Below, piece after piece: positions 403 through 18,787 of a DNA stretch of 18,887 nt. The DNA lies in NCBI GenBank assembly GCA_000388065.2, contig KB932204.1; one strand, written 5' to 3'. Numbering within the stretch: the stretch's first letter is position 1; every line of letters starts with the position of its first letter. The DNA is from Fonticula alba ATCC 38817. Lineage: Eukaryota; Protista; Nucleariida. A program made the translations under genes and the position numbers. The notes below the pieces were generated by a model. The model did no database searches. It saw only the letters and a program-made list of their open reading frames with translations, and was not told the DNA's origin.

Positions 403-3338
403 ATGCCCGTCTCCACCCCGGCGGCGCCCAGCACCCTGCTGACCCCCGCCATTAGCCCCGAGGGGCGCGCCTCGTCCGGGGATGGCGGTGGCGGTGGCGG
501 CGGTGGCGGCGGCGGCGGCAACGGCAGCGGCGGCGGCGGCGGCAACCTGGTCACCACCCTCTCCACGGCCATGATGGTCCCCACGTCGCCGGTGGAGGGG
601 GCCGACTCGACCAGTGGCAGTCCAACCAGCGGCGATGCCGATCACTCGCCTTCCACGGCGCCGAGTTCCTCCCCGCCGGCCAGCAATTCCCCCTCCTCCT
701 CTTCTTCTTCGTCCAGCAGCACCGGGACCGGGGCCAGCGGTGCCAATAGCCGTGCATTGATGGAGCGCACCGACCCTCGGTTCGGGGTAACCCGCGAGCG
801 TCGCGCGCGTATCCCCTGGTCGGATGAGGAGGCCGAGTGCGTTCGGACGTTGCCCCTCCCGCCGCCATGGCCCCTCCCGCCTTCCTGGAATCACCTTCGC
901 CCGGCTTCTGACCCTGCATTTCACTTGCGTTCCCCCCCCCCACAGCGTCGGGTCACCCCGCACCCGGAGACCCTGGGTGTTTCGGTCTGCCCTTCTGTGG
1001 GCTCCCATGGCGCGCGCCCGCGCGTGCGCGGGGCCCGGCCGGATGCCCCTCCCCCCCCCCCCCCCCCCCCCCGCCAGCCCCGGGGAGAGGTTCGGCGAGG
1101 GGTCTGGCGAGGGCCATGCCGCCAACCGCTCCTCCCCAGTCACTGCCACCGGGCCAAGGTGTGCCGACACCACCACCGTCGCTGCCGCCTCTTGCTGCCG
1201 CTCCCGGCCCCCCCCCTCCCCCCTGGACCCCGTTGTGCCCCCCTGANNNNNNNNNNNNNNNNNNNNNNNNNNNNNNNNNNNNNNNNNNNNNNNNNNNNNN
1301 NNNNNNNNNNNNNNNNNNNNNNNNNNNNNNNNNNNNNNNNNNNNNNNNNNNNNNNNNNNNNNNNNNNNNNNNNNNNNNNNNNNNNNNNNNNNNNNNNNNN
1401 NNNNNNNNNNNNNNNNNNNNNNNNNNNNNNNNNNNNNNNNNNNNNNNNNNNNNNNNNNNNNNNNNNNNNNNNNNNNNNNNNNNNNNNNNNNNNNNNNNNN
1501 NNNNNNNNNNNNNNNNNNNNNNNNNNNNNNNNNNNNNNNNNNNNNNNNNNNNNNNNCCCTGCATTTCACTTGCGTTCCCCCCCCCCCCCCCCTTTCGCCC
1601 TACCTGGCACGCAAATAGGCTGCTTACTCGCCTGGTCAAGGAGGTCGGCATTGGTCGGTGGTCGGCCATCCTGCGGAAGGGGCGCCGTGCCACCGACGGC
1701 GAGGAGGGCTCCACCGCATCGCGAGCTTCCTCCGCTCCGCCCGGGGCGGAGGCCACTGCCACGGGCAGCTCCTCCACCACCGGTGCTGCCACCGATGCCA
1801 ACGCCAACCCGGATGATCGGTCGGTCTACTTCCACCCTCGGCGGACATCGGCCGATCTCAAGGACAAGTGGCGCATCATCAACCGCACCGCCAAGTCCTA
1901 CTCCGAGCGCGGTGCGTGCCCGTGGGGGGGGGGGGGGGGGGATCTCCCCCGGCGTTGCTCTTCTCTCCCTGCCTATTTGCTTCCACCTCGCCCCCCATAT
2001 ATCTTGGCTGCGCTGACATCTTTTGCCGTTCGTCCTCCCGTATGCACGCTCTGCCCCTCACCACCTGCACGCATGTGTGTGTAGAGATGCGCCAATTCAT
2101 GCTGCTCGACGAGAACCACCTCCCGCTGTCCACCCCTCGTGGCCACCGCCATGTCTTCCGCAACCGCTTCCCTCGCGATGCGGCCCTCAAGGCGGCCACT
2201 CGAAGCTACTTTTACAACGAGGACTCCGGTATGTTGTTTGTGGTCTTTGTCACGCCCTGCCGGCCCCCCGATCCTGACTTCCCGCCTGCCTTTGCTCCCC
2301 CCCCCCCTCCCCATGCTCACTATCCGTGTTTGTGTTCCTCCCACTTCCGATCGCGGATCACGCATGCAGACTACACCATCATCTATGTTCGGGAGATCTC
2401 GGTCGTCCAGAAGCCGAAGTCCTTTGCTGGTGGCGCCGACGGCGCCGGAAGCGAGGGGGCCACCGGCGACGAGCTGGTTGCCGTGGCTTCCAACAGCCAG
2501 GCCGATATTGTGGCGCAGGAGCGCGACCGCCGCCGCCGGTCGTATGTGCATGTCTTCCGTGGGACACGCACGCGTGAGCGCGTGGCCGACATTGTCCGCT
2601 TCCGTCGCAGTGCCGACCGGGTGCGCCTCTCGCTCGCTCCTTCTCCACCGACTCTCGTTCTTCCTCTTGCGTGCCTGGCTTTTTTCCAGGGCCCGAGAGA
2701 AGCGATTGTCCTTTGTCTCCTGTGACAGCCGCCCTGTCTGACACCGAGGTTTACACCCCCCCCCTCCCCCCCTCCCCCTCTTTCTCTCCCTCGTCACTCG
2801 CGGCACAGATGATGTGGGTCGGCCATGTCACCAAGCTCCGCGAGGAAAAGTACCTCCACTGCACGGATTCGCGCACGGCGACGCCGCCACTTAGCGACAA
2901 GCGTCTGCCGGCTCCGCCGCCGGCCGCCCCGCCGGCCAGCGATCGGTCCATCGAGCAGCTCAACCCCTCGGCGCCGAATGGTGTGCTCGGCGGCCCGGGC
3001 GCCAGTGGCAGCCAGCTGCCGGTCCCGATGCTGGCCAGTGATGTGGTTCGGCTGATGTCGTCCATCGATGCTGGCGGGGCCGGCGGCGCTGGCAATGGCC
3101 CGGGCGGCGTGGTTGTCGGCCCGCCTTCGCACTTGGTGGCCCAGCTGCAGCAGCTCCACCATCATCACCACCCGCATACACACACCGGGGCCCTTCAGGG
3201 GCAGCTGGTCACGGCCAACGGCCAGCAGCTCCATCTGCCGGCCATGCAGCAGCAGGCATCACAGCAGCAGCTCCAGGGAGCTGGGCTGATGGCCACCAGT
3301 CATCCGCACCTGGTCGGCGGCCATGCCCTGCACACCAT

Positions 3339-3374
<36 letters not shown>

Positions 3375-3528
3375 GCAGCAGACCAGTGCCGGGGGCCAGG
3401 GGCACCATTTCCCCTTGCAGGCACAGGCGTCCTTGTCCGGGCACTTGGTGGCCGGTGACAACTCGGCGGCCATGATGGCCAATGCTGCCATGATGGCCGC
3501 TGACATGTCGCGCTTTGGCAACAGTGCT

Positions 3529-3566
<38 letters not shown>

Positions 3567-3854
3567 CCCCTCCACCGGTGGTGGTGGCAGTGGCCTGCTG
3601 GACATGGGTGGCTCGCCGGCCGGTGGTGCCGGTCACGGCGGCCATCCCAATCTCTCTCTCTTCAACGGGCCGAACTGGCTGTCGACCATCTCGCAGCATG
3701 GCAACACGTCGGCCGAGGCACTGTCTCTCCTGTCGCCAAATGGTGGACAGGCGGCCAATGGGAATCTTCTGTCCTCGCATCTGGCCGCGGTGGCGGCGGC
3801 GGCGTCATCCAACGGCACGGCCGGTGATGGGTCCGTTGTGATGGGGCGCCACAT

Positions 3855-3887
<33 letters not shown>

Positions 3888-4014
3888 CCACGGCCCGCAG
3901 CACATCGCGCCCCGGCATGGTGGCCCTCCCGGGCAGCAGCAGCTCCAGCAGCCTGGCCACGGGGGGCAGGTGCACATCCAGCAGCTTGGCGATCAGCAGG
4001 CCCTGTCTTCGCCA

Positions 4015-4053
<39 letters not shown>

Positions 4054-4956
4054 GATGACTACCACCTGACGCCGCTGCATGTGCAGCGCCTGCAAAGCCA
4101 GCAGCAGCAGCAACAGCAGCGCCAGCTCCAGCAGCAGCGCCAGTTGCAGGCCCAGCAGCAGGCCCAGCTCCAGCTCCAGCAGCAGCAGCAGCTTCAGCTT
4201 CAGCAGCAGCAACTTCAGCAGCAGCAGCAGCTCCAGCAGCAGCAGCTCCAGCAGCAGCAGCTCCAGCAGTTCCAGCGCCAGCAGCAGGCCCAGGCCCAGC
4301 AGATCCCGCTGTATCATGGCGGTGGCCATTATGGCGGCGGCGGGAGTCAGCAGCAGCAGCCGCCGCCACCGCAACAGGGCGGGCTCTATGAGCAGGCCCA
4401 GCAGTCGCAACATTCACAGCAACAGCAGCAGCAGCATCACCAGCAGCAGCAGCAGCAGCAGCACCACCACCAGCAGGGCGCCTATGGCAGCCAGGCCGGG
4501 CTTGCTCTGCACCAGGGCGGTGCAACCCCCCAGCAGCAACAGCACGGTGGCTTTTCCCTGATCAACACCTCCAGCCCCTCGGTCAATGCCATCGAGGCCA
4601 CCCTTGCCGGTGGCGGCGGCGGCGGCGGCGGCGGGGCCAGCCACTCGGACGCGGCCAGCCTGATGTCCGTGCGCTATGGCGGCCTGACGCAGCAGTCGCT
4701 CATGGGCTTGTCGGGTGGTGCTGGCGGTGGCGGCGGCGGCGGTGATCCGGCCGGGGTGCTTTTGCGCCTCCCTCAAACTGGCGGCGCCACCGGGGGCGGG
4801 GACATGCCTCCCTCGGCCATCCCCAACTCGGCGGTCTTTGCGGCGGTCTTCCAGAACAACAACAACATGCCCACCGGGGCTGGCGCCGGGTCGGTGGCCG
4901 TGCAGCCTCAGTCGCTGGCTGGTGCGATGGCCACCACGGCCTCCTCCTCCTCGTGA
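403..4956 (+). CDS. Telobox (TRF-like) Myb domain + MC1-like DNA-bending domain + polyQ/His/Gly-rich tail, about 1089 aa. Exons 403-836, 1619-1911, 2085-2228, 2370-2620, 2809-4956
   Basis: Exons joined by hand at GT..AG introns: 837-1618 (phase 2), 1912-2084 (phase 1), 2229-2369 (phase 1), 2621-2808 (phase 0). The CDS totals 3270 nt, open to TGA at 4954-4956. Splicing restores RIPWSDEEAE|LLTRLVKEVGIGRWSAIL...RTSADLKDKWRII and RQFMLLD...VFRNRFPRDAALKAATR...IIYVRE...VHVF. The start at ATG 403 is less certain (upstream ATGs at 84 and 100), and intron 1 spans a gap. Confidence 0.85.
805..1880 (+). other. Single Myb/SANT domain of telobox type, split by intron 1, with an insertion of about 45 aa between helix 2 and helix 3
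   Basis: W-x-x-EE...GxGxWxxI...RTxxDLKDKWR pattern. LKDKWR is the hallmark helix-3 motif of TRF1/TRF2/plant TRB-TRFL telobox domains. Confidence 0.9.
1247..1556. other. Assembly gap (N run) inside intron 1 of gene 1
   Basis: Run of N. The right flank 1557-1586 duplicates 912-941. Confidence 0.98.
2087..2860 (+). other. MC1-like (methanogen chromosomal protein 1) domain spread over exons 3-5
   Basis: Ordered motifs RQFMLLD / HVFRNRFPRDAALKAATR / IIYVRE / VHVFRG / WVGHVTKLREEK. These parallel Methanosarcina MC1 as I recall it: RNFVLRD / GVFTGKQPRQAALKAANR / IIRLRE / KVHVFK / KPFVKKE. Recognised by eye; no HMM was run. Confidence 0.75.
3241..4545 (+). repeat. Coding CAG-dominated polyglutamine tracts interspersed with His/Gly-rich low-complexity sequence
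   Basis: Many (CAG)n runs, for example 3529-3564, 3856-3885, 4015-4050 and 4099-4290, all in the exon 5 frame. Confidence 0.95.
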
Positions 4957-4993: not shown

Positions 4994-5036
4994 CAGTGTG
5001 GGGCAGTGTGGGGCAGTGTGGGGCAGTGTGGGGCAG
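4994..5036 (+). repeat. (GGGCAGTGTG)n 10-mer tandem repeat, about 4 units, forming a G4-N6-G4-N6-G4-N6-G4 motif
   Basis: GGGG runs at 5000-5003, 5010-5013, 5020-5023 and 5030-5033, just 3' of the gene 1 stop codon. Confidence 0.9.
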
Positions 5037-5844
5037 TTGGGTGACGTGCCTGCCTGTGCCTCTTGCTCCGCGCCCCCTGCCCCTTTCCCGCGCCGCCTCT
5101 CTGTCTCTTCTCCCTCGTTCCTTCTGTGCACGCGAGTGTCGGCGGATTCTCCCTCCCTCCCTCCCTCTCTCTCTCTCTCCCTCCCTGCGCGTATGTGGTG
5201 CTCCTCTTCTTCCTTGTTTGGCGGCCTCATGTGAACCGCCTGTCGTGTCACTGTGTCGTCCCCTCCCCCTGCCTCTTCCCCTCTGCCTGCGCCCCCTTAG
5301 ACCTCCCATCCATCCCCCTGCGTACAGGGGATGTTGGTGAGGGGGAGCGTTTGCGCGCGCAGTGCATACACACACACACGACGCAAGACGGGTGGGCCCG
5401 CACGCATCCACGGAGAGAAGCAAGCATCCCGGCTGCCAAGGGCCGGTGAGATTGGCGGGCTAGAAGGCGAGAGACTGCCGTGGTTGGCAGCCTGTCTCCT
5501 CTTTCCCTCCCTCTCCCCTACTTTTGCCACACATGCACCTCGCGGCTCTGTGCCGTGTGCCCTGTTCCTTGTCCTTTGTCTCCTCCCCACTCGTCTGGCT
5601 CCCTCTCTCCCCCCTCCTCCTCCTCTTCTTCTTCTTCTTCTTCTCTCTCTCTCTCTTGCCCCCAAATCACCTCTGGGCACATCTCCTCCCCCCCCCTCCT
5701 CTCTCCCCTGCCTAGTGCCCCCTTATAGATCTCGCACCTTGGCGGGGGTCCTCTGGCCCGGCCTTCTTCCCTTGATACATGCCGTGCTGTGACTTGCCGG
5801 TCGCCAAAAGATGAAACAAGAAAAAGGGCGAGGGAGGTGCTTTG

Positions 5845-5876
5845 CTCTCCCTCCCTCCCTCCCTCCCTCCCTCCCT

Positions 5877-5919
<43 letters not shown>

Positions 5920-5920
5920 C
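5845..5920. repeat. (CCCT)n followed by (CT)n microsatellite
   Basis: Direct inspection. Similar pyrimidine tracts occur at about 5150-5185 and 5610-5655. Confidence 0.9.
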
Positions 5921-6332
5921 CCCTTGCCTGTGGCTTTCCCCGATGAGAAAGCCCCAAACAGGGGCCCACCTGGCCGGCAAGTTGGCAGGCTTCGCGCACA
6001 TCGTGCGCTGCCTTCTCCTTTCCCCTGTTGGTGATGAGCGCATCCCCCCCCCCTCTTTTGTCGGGGGGAACGTGTAGAGAAAAAGCACATCGCCAACCTC
6101 TACCATAAGAGCAAGGAAGGATGTACGCGCATGTGTTGTTTTTCCCTCTCTCTCTCTCTCTCTCCCTCCCTCTGTTCCTCTCTCTCCCCCTCTTCTATAG
6201 ACATTTTCGAAGCCTGCATTGCCCCTCCCTGGTGTACTTGCGTTGGTGTGTGGATGTTTGTTTCCCTCGTCTCCTTTTGCGGGAGGGGGCGGCGGGGCGG
6301 ATGAGCTCTCCCCTTCCGTGGCTCTTTTTTTT

Positions 6333-6472
6333 NNNNNNNNNNNNNNNNNNNNNNNNNNNNNNNNNNNNNNNNNNNNNNNNNNNNNNNNNNNNNNNNNNNN
6401 NNNNNNNNNNNNNNNNNNNNNNNNNNNNNNNNNNNNNNNNNNNNNNNNNNNNNNNNNNNNNNNNNNNNNNNN
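6333..6472. other. Assembly gap
   Basis: N run flanked by T and G homopolymers. Confidence 0.98.
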
Positions 6473-6623
6473 GGGGGGGGGGGTGTGAAGATGCGGGAGA
6501 TCAGAGCCGCGGAGCGAGAGAGAGAGAGAGAGGATCACAGCGAGAAATCGCTTGCGGCGGGGTTCGCGCGCCGATGCAGAGGCCACCGGGGAAAGCGCCA
6601 GGGCAAGGGGGTGGCAGGGGGTT

Positions 6624-6657
<34 letters not shown>

Positions 6658-6904
6658 GGTGAAAATGGGTGATTAATGTCTAGCCCGGTGATGAGTCACT
6701 GTGTGGCCCGCACGGGGCACAGGCGTGGTCGGCACCATTCGCTTTCGCGCGTGAGGGGGAGTATTTTTTTTTCTAATGCACGGATCGGCGAAGGCCACCT
6801 GGATGTGGGAATATGTGTGTGCATTGGGAGTTTCTGGTGCCGAGGCCGGCAGCCGCTGGATGGGGGTAAGGGGGGACGCCCGGTGGCGAACAAACTGGAT
6901 GATG

Positions 6905-6933
6905 GCGTGCGTGCGCGCGCGCGCGCGCGCGCG
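6905..6933. repeat. Alternating (GT/GC)n tract, mostly (CG)n
   Basis: gcgtgcgtgcgcgcgc... read directly. Confidence 0.9.
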
Positions 6934-7177
6934 GGCCCTGCGCGCCAGAAAGGTCGTTCTAACCCTGCACCTAGGGACGCTCGGGTGCCCGTTGCTGCAT
7001 GCGCGCTAGTCGGGCAAACGTTGGGACGGGCTGGTGGGGTGTGTGTAGCGGGAAGCGGGCCGGGCGCCGGGGGGAGGGTACGGCGTGGCGGTGCGGGCTG
7101 GCCCGCGCCCGGACACACGCTCCTCGCTGGGCCGAACCGCGAGGTCGCCGGTGCATCGCGCGATCGACGCGTCGCCG

Positions 7178-7203
7178 GCGCGCGCGCGCGCGCGCGCGCG
7201 CGC
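7178..7203. repeat. (GC)13 dinucleotide tract
   Basis: Direct inspection. Confidence 0.9.
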
Positions 7204-7759
7204 AGGGGGGACCCCGGGGCCCTCTTGCCAAGGGCCTGCCCCAGGGGGTGGGGTGTCCCCCCTCCGGTGGCATCCGTCGCGGGCCTGTGTGCCACCGCGA
7301 GCCCCTTGCGCCAGGCCGGTTAGATGACACCCCGACTTTGGCGGCGGCGGGGGGCCGGGTGGTGGGTGCATGTGCATGCGAGTGGGTGTAAGTGTGTGCG
7401 TGTGCGGGAGCGTGAGCGCGTGCTTGTGCGTGTGCGTGTGCGTGTGCGTGTGAGGGCGGGCTGGCAGGCGGAGTGTGTGTGTGTGTGTGTGTGTGTATCG
7501 GGGGGGGGGGGGGGGGGGGGCCCGGCGCTCCGGGGGGGCCCCCCGGCAAATAGTGCCCAAGGCCCCCGGGGGGGGTCCCCCCCGACCGGCCCTCCGTGTG
7601 TGTGTGTGTGTGTGGCTCCGTTCTGGGTGCGCCGCAACGGTGCCTCGTGCAGTCGGCAATGGCACCTCCCGGGGAATGGTGAGACCGGCGGGTGTTCCAG
7701 CCAATTTTTTCGCCCCCCTCGCGGCCGGCTTGGAAGATGCCGCGCCGGGGCACACGCAC

Positions 7760-7761
<2 letters not shown>

Positions 7762-7808
<47 letters not shown>

Positions 7809-7821
7809 CTCTCTCTCTCTC
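7762..7821. repeat. Compound microsatellite (AC)22 + (TC)n
   Basis: Direct inspection. (TG)n tracts also occur at about 7474-7496 and 7586-7612. Confidence 0.9.
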
Positions 7822-7865
7822 ACATACACACACACCAGCCGCCAGCCTCACGTTGTCCCTCTGTC

Positions 7866-7879
7866 GGATTGGCCAATCC
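7866..7879. promoter_or_regulatory. Palindromic double CCAAT box (GGATTGGCCAATCC), putative promoter element of the KDM4-like gene
   Basis: Perfect 14-bp palindrome about 230 nt upstream of ATG 8111. The function is inferred. Confidence 0.4.
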
Positions 7880-8110
7880 CTCCCTCCCCCTCCCTCTTTC
7901 CCTTCCCCATCCACACCTCCCTCGAAGCCCACCCACCGTAGGCGTGTGCTTTGCATCCGTGCCCTACTCGCTGCGTATCCGGGATCTTCCCTCGTTTACG
8001 TTTGGTCCGGACGATCTAAGCCTCACGTGCACCGGCATCGCCACCGTCACCACTCCTTCGTGCTGTTGCTGGGACCTCCCTCCCAAAACACGCTTCTGTC
8101 CCTCCTCACC

Positions 8111-11407
<3,297 letters not shown>

Positions 11408-12780: not shown

Positions 12781-13183
12781 TTAAAGGCGGAGGAACTCCG
12801 AGAGGATCTCGCACTCGACGGCGTTCTCGAAGGCATCGTAGTCCTGTTGTGCCGGGCGATGGGCGATGGGCGATGGGCGATGGGCGTGCGAGTGTGCGGG
12901 TGTGTGAGCGAGAGGGCGAGGGGGCGGATGATGGGGCGCGGGAGGGCAGATGGCGGGATCGGCGGGCACGCACACCGAGGTACTCCTCGCCCTTGAAGAT
13001 CTGAGGGGGGATGGTGTTGCCACCGCTGCCACGGCGCATCTGCTTCTTGTAGTCCTCGTTGGAGGCGATGTCGCGGGTCTCGAAGGGGATCTTCTTGCTG
13101 GAGAGGATGCTCTCGATGTGGCTCTGCTTCTTCTTGATGTCGAGCGAGGCGCTGATGGAGGAAACGTAGATGATGATGGTCAT
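12781..13183 (-). CDS. SH3BGRL: SH3BGR/SH3BGRL-family thioredoxin-fold protein, 90 aa. Exons 13183-12974, 12843-12781
   Basis: MTIIIYVSSISASLDIKKKQSHIESILSSKKIPFETRDIASNEDYKKQMR...IPPQIFKGEEYLG|DYDAFENAVECEILSEFLRL matches the family pattern (IKKKQ, DIA, PPQIF, Y.GDY.AF, FL.L). The phase-0 intron is 12973-12844 (GTGCGT..CAG). There is no CxxC. Confidence 0.92.
12854..12886. repeat. (GGGCGAT)4+ heptamer repeat next to the SH3BGR 3' splice site
   Basis: Direct inspection. It reads (ATCGCCC)n on the sense strand. Confidence 0.9.
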
Positions 13184-14522: not shown

Positions 14523-15477
14523 TCAGAGAGCCAGCTCGCTGGCTTCCGGATCCCGGACCAGCAGAGGCAGGTGTACCGACGGGGGCACCATGTCGCCCGG
14601 CCGACAGGAGCAGTGGTTTCTAATGTCCTGCCGGGCACCCTTGGAGAGGAGGTAGGCGATCAGGTGGTCGTCTCGCAGCAGGGCCGCATAGTGGAGGGCC
14701 GTATTACCGAAGGCGTCCTGGGCATCGACATTGGCGCCATTCTGAAGGAGGAGCTCGGCCAGGGGAAGGTTCAATGTGGAGATGGCCGTATGCAGGGCCC
14801 CCATGCCGAGACGCACGCGACTCAAGTACACCGGGGCCGCTTCCAGTGAGAGGGGGAAGAAGAAGGCGCCGCCCGGTCGCGAGGAGGAGGAGGAGGACGA
14901 CGAGGAGGAGGACATGCCGCCGGTGGGAGAAGTGGTGGCGGCGGGTGGCGGCGTAGGGCCCGGGGCCGGAGCCAAAGACAGGGCACTGCCCTGGCTGCGG
15001 GTTGGGCTGTCATGCGGCCGTTCCAGCGCCAGGCCGGTGGGAGTCACGGCCGACGGCGTGCGCGGACTCAGGCCAGCCCCCCCGGGCATGGTGCCGGATT
15101 GGGTGGTGACCGGCGAGAGGGCAGCCAGGTCCTTGGCCGACGGGGCCGCGGCCCCACCGACCGCGCGTCGGACACGCTGCGGGGTGATGATCGGGTCGTC
15201 GTCCGACTCATCATCAGACACATCGTCATCGTCGGACACATCATCATCGTCATCGGACCAGGACAGCAATGAGCAGGCCGAGTCCAGGGTTTCGGAGGAT
15301 TCCGAAGAGAAGAGCCCCCCGGCAGGCCGGTGGTGGATGGGCAAGCCGGCGTCCTTGGCGGAGGCGCCTACGGTGGGGGCGGCGGCGGCGGCGGTAGTGG
15401 CGGCGGGAGCCGCCGCGACCAGCTCATTCTGATGGTGAGGGGAGATGGTGGTGGTGGTGGTGGTGGAGGTGGGGGTG

Positions 15478-15511
<34 letters not shown>

Positions 15512-18500
15512 GCTGCTCTCTGTTGGGGTGGAGGAGGAGCTGGTGCGAGTCCGGCCGCAAGAGGTGGTGATGGAGGTGGAGATCCTCACCGGGGCCGGAC
15601 TCGATGTCGGAGGAGGTGATGTCCGACTCGTCGCTCGAGGAGGACGAGTCGTACGAGTGAATGGATGCATGGGACCCGGAGGTGGGGATGCCGCCGGGGA
15701 TGTCGCCGGCGCCGGTGCCACCGCTGGCCGAGCTGCTCCCACCCGGGGTCAGGCGCTTGGATCGGGTGACCGCGGCCGAGCGCTTGCGCTCGGCGGCCAG
15801 CTCCTCCACGGCACAGAGGGCCGTCACCTCGTCCAGGAACTCGAGCCCATTCACATCGGCCCCGAGAGGCAGCGTGTGCAGGGTGCCGAGCGGGTCGCCA
15901 AAGCGCACATACGCCAGCATCTTGCGAACGAGCAGGCGCGCCTGCTCCGCCGCCGGGAGGGCCAGCTCAGCCGGCAGGAGCAGCGGCCGGACAAACAACT
16001 TTTGCGAGTACTTGGCGATGATATAGCGCTGACGCTCGTCCCGGGGGGCGCCCTGGGGGGGCTTGCTGATGAGGGCCCCTTCGGTGGAGGGGTCGCCGCC
16101 GGAGGCCGGCCCCCCCGGTGGGGGGGTCGCCCCAAGCAGGGCCTCTAGGATGGAATTCGACCGGTCATTGCCGAGGGACACCTGCATGGCCACCAGCTCC
16201 GGGGTCCAGCTCTGGACGTCCAGGGTGGAAGAGCGGATCTTGGTGATGTGAGTGCCGAGGGATCGGTGTACACCGGAGCAGCCTGAGCCGCGCGAAGCCG
16301 CCAACGCAGAGGGGGGGGGGGGGAGAAAAGGGCAGGGACATGGTCAGCATCGGGAACATAGCGACCCGCCACCGGGAGGGAGCAAAGCCGGGAAAGGAAC
16401 AGAGGACCGGCACGCACCAAGGCAAATGCACACGCCAAGGTTGATGGAGCACCAGTCGGGATTGGCAGCGCCACAGTCGGCGCACTGGAGGTTGGAGGGG
16501 ACCTGCGTGGTGATTTGGTCGTGGATCTATGGGCAAAATGCGCGCGCACACACATGCAAGCGAGGCGGTCAAAGGGGGGAGGCAAGCAGACAGCAGAAGG
16601 GCCATGTCAAAGTGCGGAAGTTAGAACACGGGCCAAGGGGAGTCGCATGAAGAAGAGGGGACGGGGGGGGGGGGACAAAGCACGGAGGAAATGCACAAGG
16701 CCATGCCCCACTTGCTGGGCCAGGGCGCCGGCCGACGCACACTCATTTCCCCAGCACGGACGTCGGATGTGTGAAGCGGCCCGTGCAGCGAAGACTCGAT
16801 GGACTTCTGGATGACCTGGATCCAGGTGGAAAGCTCCTCCTCGGACATGGCCTGGTAGAGGCGCCGCGAGGAGGGGGAAATGAGCTCGAAGCAGAATCGG
16901 CGCTCGGCCTTGGGGGCCGAGCGGACCGAGCAGGTCCGAAGATCGGTGCTGGTGCCGCCCCGAGGCCCGGGCTTCCAGTGGGCATACTCATGCAGAGCCC
17001 CCTCACTCACCACGCACCAGACCTTGCGCCATTCGCGAGTGGCGGTCTTCTGGTGCATGGTATAGAGGAACCCCTGGCGGCCGCGGGCCAAGGCGCGCGG
17101 GTCATTCCCGTCATTCATCGGGTCCAGGTCGCGGATGCCATGGTACTTGGAGGCCGCCCCGGCAGACAGGCCCCCGCCAGGCCGGCCGACCAGGATATTC
17201 CTCCCGAAGAGGGACACCACACGCTGCTCGTGCTGGCGGATGCGCAGACGGTCGGCCGCCTCGCGGCTGCCATCCTGGATGCTTTGGCGCACGGTGTCGC
17301 GCTCGTTGCGCCACGTGTGGGCATTGGTCCAGCCCTGGGAAATGTGGTCCACCAGGGAGGCCTGCTTGGTGGCCATGCGCGAGGATAGCTGGCCCAGCTT
17401 CGAGTGCCAGGTGGCATGCTTCTCCACCAGGGAGCTGGCGTAGTGCTGGATTTCCTGCTCCTTCAAAACAAAGAGGCTCTCCATGTTGGTCAGGTAGTCG
17501 TAGCGAATCAAATTGTAGGACCCCTGCCGGTGGATGTACTTCTTGTCGATTTGGATCAGCTTTTCCGGGCGCTTGTGCGCATAGGTGCTGAGGTACTTTT
17601 CCAGGAAGGCATGGTACGAGGCGGAGGTCTTGTCGAAGTCCGTCTTCATGTCTTCCAGCCGGCGGAAGTCCGTTTCGCACATTTGAACCAGCGGATCGAT
17701 GAGAATGCACCGGATGTGGTACCGGTAGGACTCGTGCGCCTCGCCCTCCTGCGAGAAGATGGATGACAGGTAGTCCGTGGCCGAGGTGACGCCGCGGAAG
17801 GCCGAGAAGCTGGCCAGGAGTTGGGTCTGTGCGTTCTGGATGGCCTCGATGCTGGCCTCGTAGGCCTGCAGGGCGGCCAGCAATCCCCGGACCTTCTGCG
17901 TGAATTGGTGAGCATCGCGCTCCAGCTCGTCCACCGTGGCCCGGAAGAGGGGGCCCTCCTCGGTGGATGTGGCCTCGGCCAGGATGGTGGCACTGCCGGC
18001 CGGGGCGGAGCCGCCGGGCCCGGTGCCGGTGGCGCTGGCCGAGGACGATGCCCCGGCGGGGCCGGTCACGCCGGGCCCCGGGGTGGCGGCCGACCCGGTC
18101 CCGGTGGCGGGGAAGTTATAGGAGGACAGCGATTGGGTCGAGCTGCTGAAGGGGATTTTGCCCGATCGCACGGACGCCGTGTCGCTGGATGCGTGCCTAT
18201 TTGACGAGGCATCTGGCAGGGCTGCACCCAGGGGACCGGGATGGCGGAAGCGCATGCGGGCATGGTAAGAAGTCGAAAGGTGAAGCCCATGGACGAGAGA
18301 GCAGCCAATCAAAACCCCGGGAAGCCTGGTGTCCGGCTCTGCCGCCTGCCTGCTACCCCCCCGCCCCCCACCCCACCCCACCCCACCCCGGGAGTGGCAG
18401 CACTGGCAACCGGCCACAAGGCACGACGGACAACAACGCACAGAGAGAGGCAGAAGAAATGGACGAGGCAGAGGAGGCCGGGGCCGGGGGCGAGGCGATG

Positions 18501-18787
18501 CCCCCGCCGGGAGCTGTTGATCCTGATGAAAACCCGGCCCCGGTGCTCGATTGTGAGGCCATCCCGAGGGCCGAGGTAGAGGGGGCCAGCGAGCTGGATG
18601 ACCCGAGGGGGCCGGTGTTGGCATTGCCGGATCCCGGGGCGCCGGGCCCGGACCCGCTCGCAGAGGATGAACCTGACCCCGGGCCTGAGGAGGAAGAGCT
18701 GGAAGAGCTTGAGGCGAAGATGTTGACACTCCGGGCGATGCGGAAGATGTTACCCGGCGAGGAGGGGTGGCTGTTGGAGGAAGTCAT
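14523..18787 (-). CDS. ACAP: BAR-PH-ArfGAP-ankyrin protein (ACAP/centaurin-beta-like), about 1231 aa. Exons 18787-18442, 18221-16741, 16526-16418, 16282-14523
   Basis: BAR start EEGPLFRATVDELE. PH: RQGFLY...WRKVWCVV...DLRTCSVR...ERRFCFELISP...YQAMSEEELSTWIQVIQ. ArfGAP zinc finger NLQCADCGAANPDWCSINLGVCICL|GCSGVHRSLG with the Arg finger. Ankyrin repeats LHTAI...LLLQNGANVDAQDAFGNTALHYAA. All three donors are GTGCGT and the CDS is 3696 nt in frame. The exon 1 to exon 2 junction is the least certain. Confidence 0.92.

Follow-up and report, generated by a model that had tools for sequence, protein, structure and literature searches.

An intron-bearing Fonticula alba gene coupling a telobox Myb domain to an MC1-like domain: a candidate reader and bender of telomere-type DNA

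The window analyzed here, the whole 18,887-nucleotide (nt) stretch of contig KB932204.1 from Fonticula alba ATCC 38817, carries near its start an intron-bearing gene whose predicted product joins a TRF-type telobox Myb domain (residues 131–234) to a second domain of ∼150 residues (residues 244–390) homologous to MC1, the monomeric, DNA-bending chromosomal protein found in Methanosarcinales, haloarchaea, and giant viruses. The five exons are joined in frame to a coding sequence of 3270 nt, or 1089 codons and a stop (Table 1). All four introns begin with GT and end with AG (donors, in order: GTGCGT, GTGCGT, GTATGT, and GTGCGC), and they are C/T-rich (A ∼9–10%, T 17–29%), unlike the exons. The peptide motifs from which the initial annotation had read a Myb–MC1 fusion are all present, in the order and frames given there, and the short distance it described between Myb helix 3 and the second domain (about 10 amino acids) measures ∼10–12 residues from the end of helix 3 to the first strand.

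The first domain was assigned to the telobox type in the initial annotation, and this assignment is borne out by the helix 3 signature (ADLKDKWRI), by profile matches, and by structural superposition. The profile of the family of relatives described below matches human TRF1 and TRF2, zebrafish TRF, plant TBP1/RTBP1/TRP1, and yeast Tbf1 among PDB chains at E-values of 1e-15 to 1e-7, with the TRF1, TRF2, and TBP1 chains at 1e-15 to 1e-9, and the spliced window protein aligns to the Myb part of this profile over residues 114–165 and 210–236. When exon 2 is taken alone, it matches the Pfam Myb family (PF00249) at E 0.014, a weak score explained by the exon junction and a loop insert, which split the domain; its sole matches in the PDB, plant telomere-binding proteins, are likewise weak because of the 44-residue low-complexity insert that lies between these helices 2 and 3. 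Among the relatives, PF00249 is matched at E ≤ 0.01 in 29 of 39 (best 8e-10), and no TRFH dimerization domain was detected by Pfam in the family. Structural models were made from two of these relatives, P0002 and P0008. The two-domain AlphaFold2 model of P0008 (predicted local distance difference test, pLDDT, 88.6; predicted template modeling score, pTM, 0.73) superposes on the TRF1– and TRF2–DNA complexes with template modeling (TM) scores of 0.84–0.91 and 42–48% identity (Foldseek). A conserved short strand precedes the Myb domain in this model (P0008 residues 8–15); its window counterpart, at residues ∼114–127 (nt 742–783), aligns weakly, and the strand may dock onto the MC1-like sheet.

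For the second domain, homology to MC1 is established by the comparison of sequence profiles. Scans with PF05854 (MC1) and PF00249, as proposed in the initial annotation, gave a divided answer: the window pieces stay below the MC1 gathering cut-off, with 17.6 bits (E 0.0048, profile positions 14–37) for exon 3 alone and 18.1 bits (E 0.0034) for exon 3 with the in-frame intron 3 and exon 4, while relatives match both families. The MC1 cut-off is passed by three of the ten relatives tested (P0005, 23.6 bits; P0008, 24.8 bits; P0011, 25.5 bits; profile positions 12–92 of 96), the other seven scoring 15.9–22.3 bits, and PF05854 is matched at E ≤ 0.01 in 21 of the 39 family members. The family profile also matches the solved MC1 chain 1t23 (as well as 2khl and 2nbj) at E 6.8e-4, over residues 11–92 of 93. 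A set of archaeal MC1 sequences was gathered from 120 loci by means of a DNA pattern back-translated from a 1t23 segment, yielding 102 distinct MC1 open reading frames (ORFs). When the family domain, with the window’s own spliced domain among its sequences, was aligned by hhalign with these 102 sequences, the probability was 97.8% (E 1.2e-12, 98 columns); a second hhalign comparison with archaeal MC1 gave 98.4% (E 8.2e-15, 90 columns), and a separate one on independent alignments gave 97.2%; overall, E-values ranged from 4e-11 to 8e-15 over 90–99 columns, with all six secondary-structure elements covered, and the controls (a reversed template and 20 column-shuffled templates) gave at most 1.8%. 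In addition, a hidden Markov model (HMM) built from archaeal MC1 alone locates the same region in every family member, including the window protein. Searches of PDB sequences by phmmer, with the exon 3–4 read-through and with P0011, returned no MC1 match because these single sequences are too far from MC1. Archaeal-type MC1 genes were also encountered on eight viral contigs of 25–85 kb (IMG/VR; L126–L133), where they are 33–62% identical to Methanosarcinales MC1, and a contig of a Bacteroidales metagenome-assembled genome (L068) likewise matches the MC1 DNA pattern.

The predicted fold points for the most part in the same direction. The AlphaFold2 model of P0002, a domain-only member for which the family served as the alignment (pLDDT 92.5, pTM 0.82), runs strand, strand, helix, strand, and then two long strands, in accordance with the published description of MC1, a fold of one helix and antiparallel strands (two plus three) in which a long arm separates strand 4 from strand 5 (PMC6776556). 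When compared by Foldseek with the predicted viral structures of BFVD, the model matched almost only giant-virus proteins, several of them named “Chromosomal protein MC1 domain-containing protein,” with probabilities of 0.97–1.0 and TM scores of 0.45–0.65 for the top matches, but E-values of 0.014–0.1. The AlphaFold and Foldseek comparison advised in the initial annotation, made here on relatives, thus recovered the MC1 element order and the giant-virus MC1 proteins but did not return a solved MC1 structure. Together with the profile–profile probabilities of 97–98% and their clean controls, the match to 1t23, and the relatives that pass the Pfam cut-off, these top fold matches uphold the kinship of the second domain with MC1 that had been proposed.

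Relatives were sought among 1.84 billion representatives with a query consisting of the read-through from exon 3 to exon 4. The intervening intron 3 preserves the frame and has no stop codon, and its retention would lengthen the stretch from the MC1 helix to strand 3 by 47 residues. This search recovered 39 clusters at E ≤ 1e-3, with lengths of 69–518 residues, nearly all with a Myb domain followed by the same second domain; a second search contributed 17 further proteins and cluster look-ups a few more, for a total of at least 65 proteins. Uncharacterized database entries of this kind, the existence of which the initial annotation had left open, are therefore present, although the window protein itself is absent from both protein collections searched. 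The MC1 helix motif occurs in 63 of 66 sequences (window included) and both motifs occur in 51, the remainder being mostly N-terminal fragments or sequences with a variant helix 3. In 43 of these 51 sequences the two motifs, telobox and MC1 helix, lie 44 residues apart, compared with 45 in the window. The family’s C-terminal domain has 24 columns with conservation of 80% or more; the window matches 23 of them and differs only at residue 271, where Trp has become Phe. The second domain usually ends the protein, and since most relatives encode both domains in a single uninterrupted ORF, the fusion is not an artefact of the gene model. As judged from these sequences, the comparisons show the Myb–MC1 pairing to be a conserved family in uncultured or unannotated eukaryotes.

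Look-ups of 30 clusters gave neither an informative product name nor an MC1 annotation for any of them, and the precomputed Pfam annotation records Myb only; because Myb alone is recorded for every relative, current annotation misses the MC1-like domain. A Sphagnum compactum assembly supplies the only relative with an organism label, on a contig of 33 kb; because no other labeled relative was found, this contig possibly stems from a guest organism. No close relatives were found by sequence scans of viral contigs or by a scan of bacterial and archaeal genomes, and the window’s own peptide found no relative among metagenome contigs, in which the family alignment located six additional loci only. 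The environmental contigs that carry family members are eukaryotic and compact, with 39–45% GC in the three measured, and several (L002, L005, L140, L141, L142, L143, and the P0033 contig) have neighbors in common: patatin/DUF3336, LRR_9, TCTP, TFIIA-gamma, Sec2p, glutaredoxin, and CENP-C. Given these shared neighbor genes, most family members probably derive from one clade. The window has none of these neighbors and is far more GC-rich, which argues that it belongs to a second, distant lineage.

The architecture of the relatives, together with a profile match that runs through all four splice junctions, supports the gene model by homology and indicates that the fusion is real and conserved: the family profile scores the spliced window protein at 176–206 bits over residues 114–165 and 210–395. 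Exon 1 starts at the first ATG of its frame, and its alignment to the family profile, over residues 114–145, extends as far as the junction, where the donor GTGCGT lies at 837. The exon 1/2 junction splits a Glu codon, and the resulting Myb helix 1 aligns to the family profile across it without a gap. Exon 3 is the best-matched stretch in all 39 relatives and aligns to MC1 residues 4–35, exon 4 maps onto MC1 His56 and Arg71–Trp74, and the strand 5 portion of exon 5 aligns to the family and to MC1 Lys81–Lys91.

The assembly gap (a run of N) falls wholly within intron 1 and breaks no coding sequence. In the P0004 gene (L005, 8380–8660), an intron coincides in residue and phase with that at 836/1619 in the window, inside a Glu codon six residues past the first Myb tryptophan, although the two genomes differ widely (45% GC as against ∼65%). 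This shared intron, the continuous alignment of Myb helix 1, and a donor hexamer identical to that of intron 2 indicate that no exon was lost in the gap; a hidden exon was ruled out on the grounds that the Myb alignment runs unbroken across the exon 1/2 junction. A 30-nt stretch at 912–941, ending in a poly-C run, is repeated exactly at 1557–1586, directly after the gap. If the two are one copy, intron 1 measures 137 nt, near the lengths of introns 2–4, and the ∼300 nt before the gap (946–1246) may represent an assembly duplication or a misjoin beside the poly-C tract, and are possibly misplaced.

Several features are peculiar to the window protein. Lineage-specific low-complexity inserts occupy the loop between Myb helices 2 and 3 and that between MC1 strands 3 and 4 (Table 1), the latter loop having inserts in other relatives too. 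The interpretation of these inserts as overlooked introns was provisionally rejected, as their third-position composition is coding-like and their T content is below that of the introns. The C-terminal tail, of ∼700 residues rich in Gln, Gly, and His, was seen in the window protein only; the relatives stop within ∼140 residues of the MC1 helix, and most end right after the MC1-like domain. A word-index protein search with the first 130 residues of exon 5 gave no match, so that neither the window protein nor its tail has relatives of 393–1251 residues in that collection. The glutamine-rich tail could have an added transcriptional or scaffolding role, and would be suited to contacts between proteins or to transcriptional activation.

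The DNA contacts of MC1 are made by Arg4, Lys22, Gln23, Pro24, Arg25, Gln26, Lys54, His56, Arg71, Pro72, Trp74, Met75, Lys81, Lys86, Ile89, and Lys91; Arg25 and Lys86 are reported to be essential for groove compression, Pro72 inserts into the minor groove, and Trp74 intercalates (PMC6776556). Correspondences to these residues were obtained by column counts through the profile alignment, and eight of the 16 contact positions are kept in kind in the window: R245, R270, P272, R273, H351, F368 (aromatic for Trp), K383, and K388. Across the family, Arg4 is matched by Arg and Pro24 by Pro in 100% of sequences, Lys22 by Arg in 97%, Arg25 by Arg in 84% (R273 in the window), His56 by His in 89%, Trp74 by Phe in 86% (F368), Lys86 by Lys in 92% (K383), and Lys91 by Arg or Lys in 56% (K388). 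The MC1-like domain is basic, with an isoelectric point (pI) of 9.9 and a net charge of +7 in the window, and a median pI of 9.6 in the family compared with 10.4 for archaeal MC1.

The retained contact residues, the basic domain, and the near-invariant spacing to Myb helix 3 fit a two-module DNA reader. The gene product is probably a nuclear protein that recognizes specific DNA sequences and carries two DNA-binding modules in fixed relative positions, acting as a telomeric-repeat reader with a built-in DNA-bending module. Helix 3 of the Myb domain would read double-stranded telomere-type repeats (TTAGGG-like) in the major groove, and the MC1-like domain would sit on the neighboring duplex and kink or wrap it, using the retained equivalents of Arg25 and Lys86 for phosphate neutralization and the Phe at the Trp74 position as an aromatic wedge within the arm. 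Recognition and deformation of telomeric or telobox DNA would in this way be combined in one polypeptide, a role that can be likened to bending by TRF1, wrapping by TRF2, or the part played by the H1 domain of plant TRB proteins. A more tentative extension, which we hold to be possible but doubtful, is that these proteins are the main double-strand telomere-repeat binders of poorly sampled eukaryotic lineages, in which TRF-type recognition with MC1-type bending or looping would replace TRFH-based shelterin; they would also be the first cellular eukaryotic family with an MC1 fold, and would record a transfer of chromatin proteins between archaea or giant viruses and eukaryotic nuclei.

Comparison with known systems places each half of the protein. 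In MC1 itself (PF05854; PDB 1t23, 2khl, and 2nbj) the elements follow one another as in the model of the window family (strand 1, strand 2, helix, strand 3, strand 4, arm, strand 5), and features common to both are the Pro-Arg with which the helix begins, a His in strand 4, a Lys in strand 5, the arm aromatic, and the basic charge. Whereas MC1 is a free-standing monomer of ∼93 residues (pI ∼10.3) with little sequence preference, the window has it as a fused domain in a 1089-residue protein, encoded by a eukaryotic, intron-bearing gene and joined to a sequence-specific Myb domain; half of the contacts differ, Phe takes the place of Trp74, and the strand 3–4 loop has inserts. The MC1-like proteins of giant viruses (Mimivirus gp275/R252; bioRxiv 10.1101/2024.02.22.580433), which are the best structural matches to the model, provide a precedent for an MC1-type fold outside archaea and have disordered flanks, but they serve in viral packaging or condensing and lack the Myb domain that the window family combines with MC1.

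On the Myb side, TRF1 and TRF2 of vertebrates and TBP1, RTBP1, and TRP1 of plants have the same type of domain, with the Lys-Asp-x-Trp-Arg core of helix 3 in the window. In the window family, however, the Myb domain is internal and is followed by MC1, unlike the Myb of TRF proteins, which ends the protein, and the Myb of the window differs from those of the TRF and TBP1 types in its 44-residue loop insert. The design logic of plant TRB/SMH proteins is the same, a telobox Myb domain followed by a chromatin-derived architectural DNA-binding domain; this is an analogy and not common ancestry of the second domain, which is a winged-helix GH1 domain in TRB/SMH and MC1-like in the window. Pfam scans of the window pieces and of the relatives detected no linker-histone family, and a plant TRB-type protein was rejected on this basis.

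The remainder of the window is GC-rich (∼50–71% per kb) and eukaryotic in character, and includes three other genes (Table 1). For the ArfGAP neighbor, the best named matches are from Mucorales (29% identity), and an unnamed protein matches at 38%. At ∼5000–8000 and 10100–10400, intergenic and intronic DNA is densely occupied by microsatellites of the (CA)n, (GA)n, and (CT)n types and by poly-C/poly-G tracts, which give rise to numerous ORFs on either strand that are long but spurious. A search for Rfam families was negative over the entire window. A viral insertion is disfavored by the four spliceosomal introns, the host-like composition, the ordinary cellular neighbors, and the lack of a relative in the viral contigs scanned.

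Table 1. Coordinates of the Myb–MC1 gene, its inserts, and other features of the window.
Feature	Position	Strand	Description
Exon 1	403–836	+	Start codon, low-complexity N-terminus (Gly/Ser/Pro runs), basic arm, onset of Myb helix 1; Myb part from ∼793
Intron 1	837–1618	+	GT...AG; C-rich as the other introns; includes assembly gap 1247–1556
Exon 2	1619–1911	+	Myb helices 1–3 (to 1886) with telobox helix 3 ADLKDKWRI, start of linker; aligned to family profile
Insert 1	1680–1811		Residues 166–209 (44 amino acids), Myb helix 2–3 loop
Intron 2	1912–2084 (173 nt)	+	GTGCGT...TAG; inside the conserved Myb–MC1 linker; junction keeps the linker in register with the family
Exon 3	2085–2228	+	End of linker, then MC1-like strand 1, strand 2, and helix (NRFPRDAALKAATR)
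Intron 3	2229–2369 (141 nt)	+	GTATGT...CAG; T/C-rich; relatives have no residues here
Exon 4	2370–2620	+	MC1-like strand 3 (IIYVRE), loop insert, strand 4 (YVHVFRG), arm (IVRF); aligned to family profile
Insert 2	2399–2539		Residues ∼301–347 (∼47 amino acids), MC1 strand 3–4 loop
Intron 4	2621–2808 (188 nt)	+	GTGCGC...CAG; junction restores strand 5 in register
Exon 5	2809–4956	+	MC1-like strand 5 (2809 to ∼2856, MMWVGHVTKLREEK), long tail, stop 4954–4956; uninterrupted ORF
Assembly gap	6333–6472		Upstream of the JmjN/JmjC gene
JmjN/JmjC histone-demethylase-like gene	8150–10470	+	Several exons; assembly gap 9644–9815 within span
SH3BGR/glutaredoxin-like exon	12974–13183	−	
BAR-PH-ArfGAP-ankyrin (ACAP-like) gene	14526–16304, 16624–18729	−	

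Several observations weigh against a telomeric reader with a built-in bending module. Half of the MC1 contact positions (8 of 16) are changed, with Gln26 replaced by Asp or Glu, Ile89 by Glu, and Arg71 and Lys81 by hydrophobic residues, and the window version has large inserts in both of its DNA-binding domains. The window pieces reach 17.6–18.1 bits against a Pfam gathering cut-off of 23, with ∼23 residues covered and no contribution from strands 3–5. In structural searches, the BFVD E-values are only 0.014–0.1, and Foldseek comparison of both models with the PDB did not return solved MC1, the two-domain model giving only TRF Myb domains; this miss may be due to the solved MC1 structures being nuclear magnetic resonance (NMR) models with a mobile arm. 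Finally, proteins with a telobox Myb domain also work away from telomeres, as do plant TRBs and yeast Tbf1, which bind promoter sites.

This last point underlies the possible, if not favored, alternative that the protein is a promoter-binding transcription factor acting at interstitial teloboxes and not at chromosome ends, in which the MC1-like domain would be a cofactor of the architectural kind and the Gln-rich tail would serve in activation or condensate formation. The promoter binding established for telobox Myb proteins is consistent with this, as are the Gln/His-rich tail of ∼700 residues in the window protein and the ordinary cellular genes around it, but most relatives have no tail and end after the MC1-like domain, which implies a conserved core function independent of the tail, and the Myb domain is closest to those of bona fide telomere proteins; the promoter and telomere roles are, moreover, compatible with each other. 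It is unlikely that the MC1-like domain, though a true homolog, no longer binds DNA and instead rides on the Myb reader as a protein–protein, dimerization, or RNA-binding module. Such a change of function could be read from the altered half of the contact positions, some of them now acidic, from the lower basicity relative to archaeal MC1 (median pI 9.6 versus 10.4), and from the extra conserved N-terminal strand that AlphaFold2 predicts before the Myb domain (P0008 residues 8–15), yet Arg25 and Lys86, reported as essential for groove compression (PMC6776556), are among the positions kept, as is an aromatic residue in place of Trp74, the domain has remained strongly basic, and its rigid 44-residue spacing to Myb helix 3 is what would be expected if both modules share one DNA.

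Convergence, in which a small, basic, strand-rich domain resembles MC1 through one shared helix motif, is highly improbable: the window’s own Pfam match spans only ∼23 profile residues and the PDB fold search was negative, but the alignment to archaeal MC1 extends through all six elements (90–99 columns, 97–98%, with clean controls), and an HMM made from archaeal MC1 only finds the same region in every family member. Even more remote is the chance that the Myb and MC1-like exons belong to two genes misjoined at the gap or at intron 2, or that the locus is a contaminant or a giant-virus insertion. The assembly gap and the duplicated 30-mer in intron 1, the absence of the window protein from both protein collections, and the occurrence of MC1 domains in giant viruses (bioRxiv 10.1101/2024.02.22.580433) could be taken to suggest such an artefact; it is contradicted by the relatives that carry Myb domain, linker, and MC1-like domain in single uninterrupted ORFs, by the conserved linker that spans the exon 2/3 junction in register, by the intron position common to the P0004 gene, by the four spliceosomal introns and a base composition like that of the cellular neighbors (JmjC, SH3BGR, and ArfGAP), and by the viral-contig scans, which found no viral relative by sequence.

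A previous survey reported the MC1 superfamily in viruses of eukaryotes “but not in eukaryotic proteomes” (PMC5671483), and the study of Mimivirus gp275 found no algal homolog (bioRxiv 10.1101/2024.02.22.580433). Our literature searches found no paper on a eukaryotic MC1-domain or Myb–MC1 protein, in agreement with the statement in the initial annotation that no characterized protein of this kind was known. The families themselves, Myb and MC1, are known; neither their combination in one protein nor the occurrence of MC1 in cellular eukaryotes appears to have been described, although we cannot exclude that domain databases already list such Myb–MC1 entries without comment. A conserved, intron-bearing eukaryotic family with an MC1-homologous domain alters the picture of MC1 as a protein of archaea and giant viruses. 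Because this domain is rigidly coupled to a telomere-type Myb domain, two questions become directly testable: how eukaryotes with no TRFH domain seen in their telobox proteins might shape telomeric DNA, and from where the MC1 genes of giant viruses originated, for which a host donor of the Myb–MC1 kind becomes a candidate.

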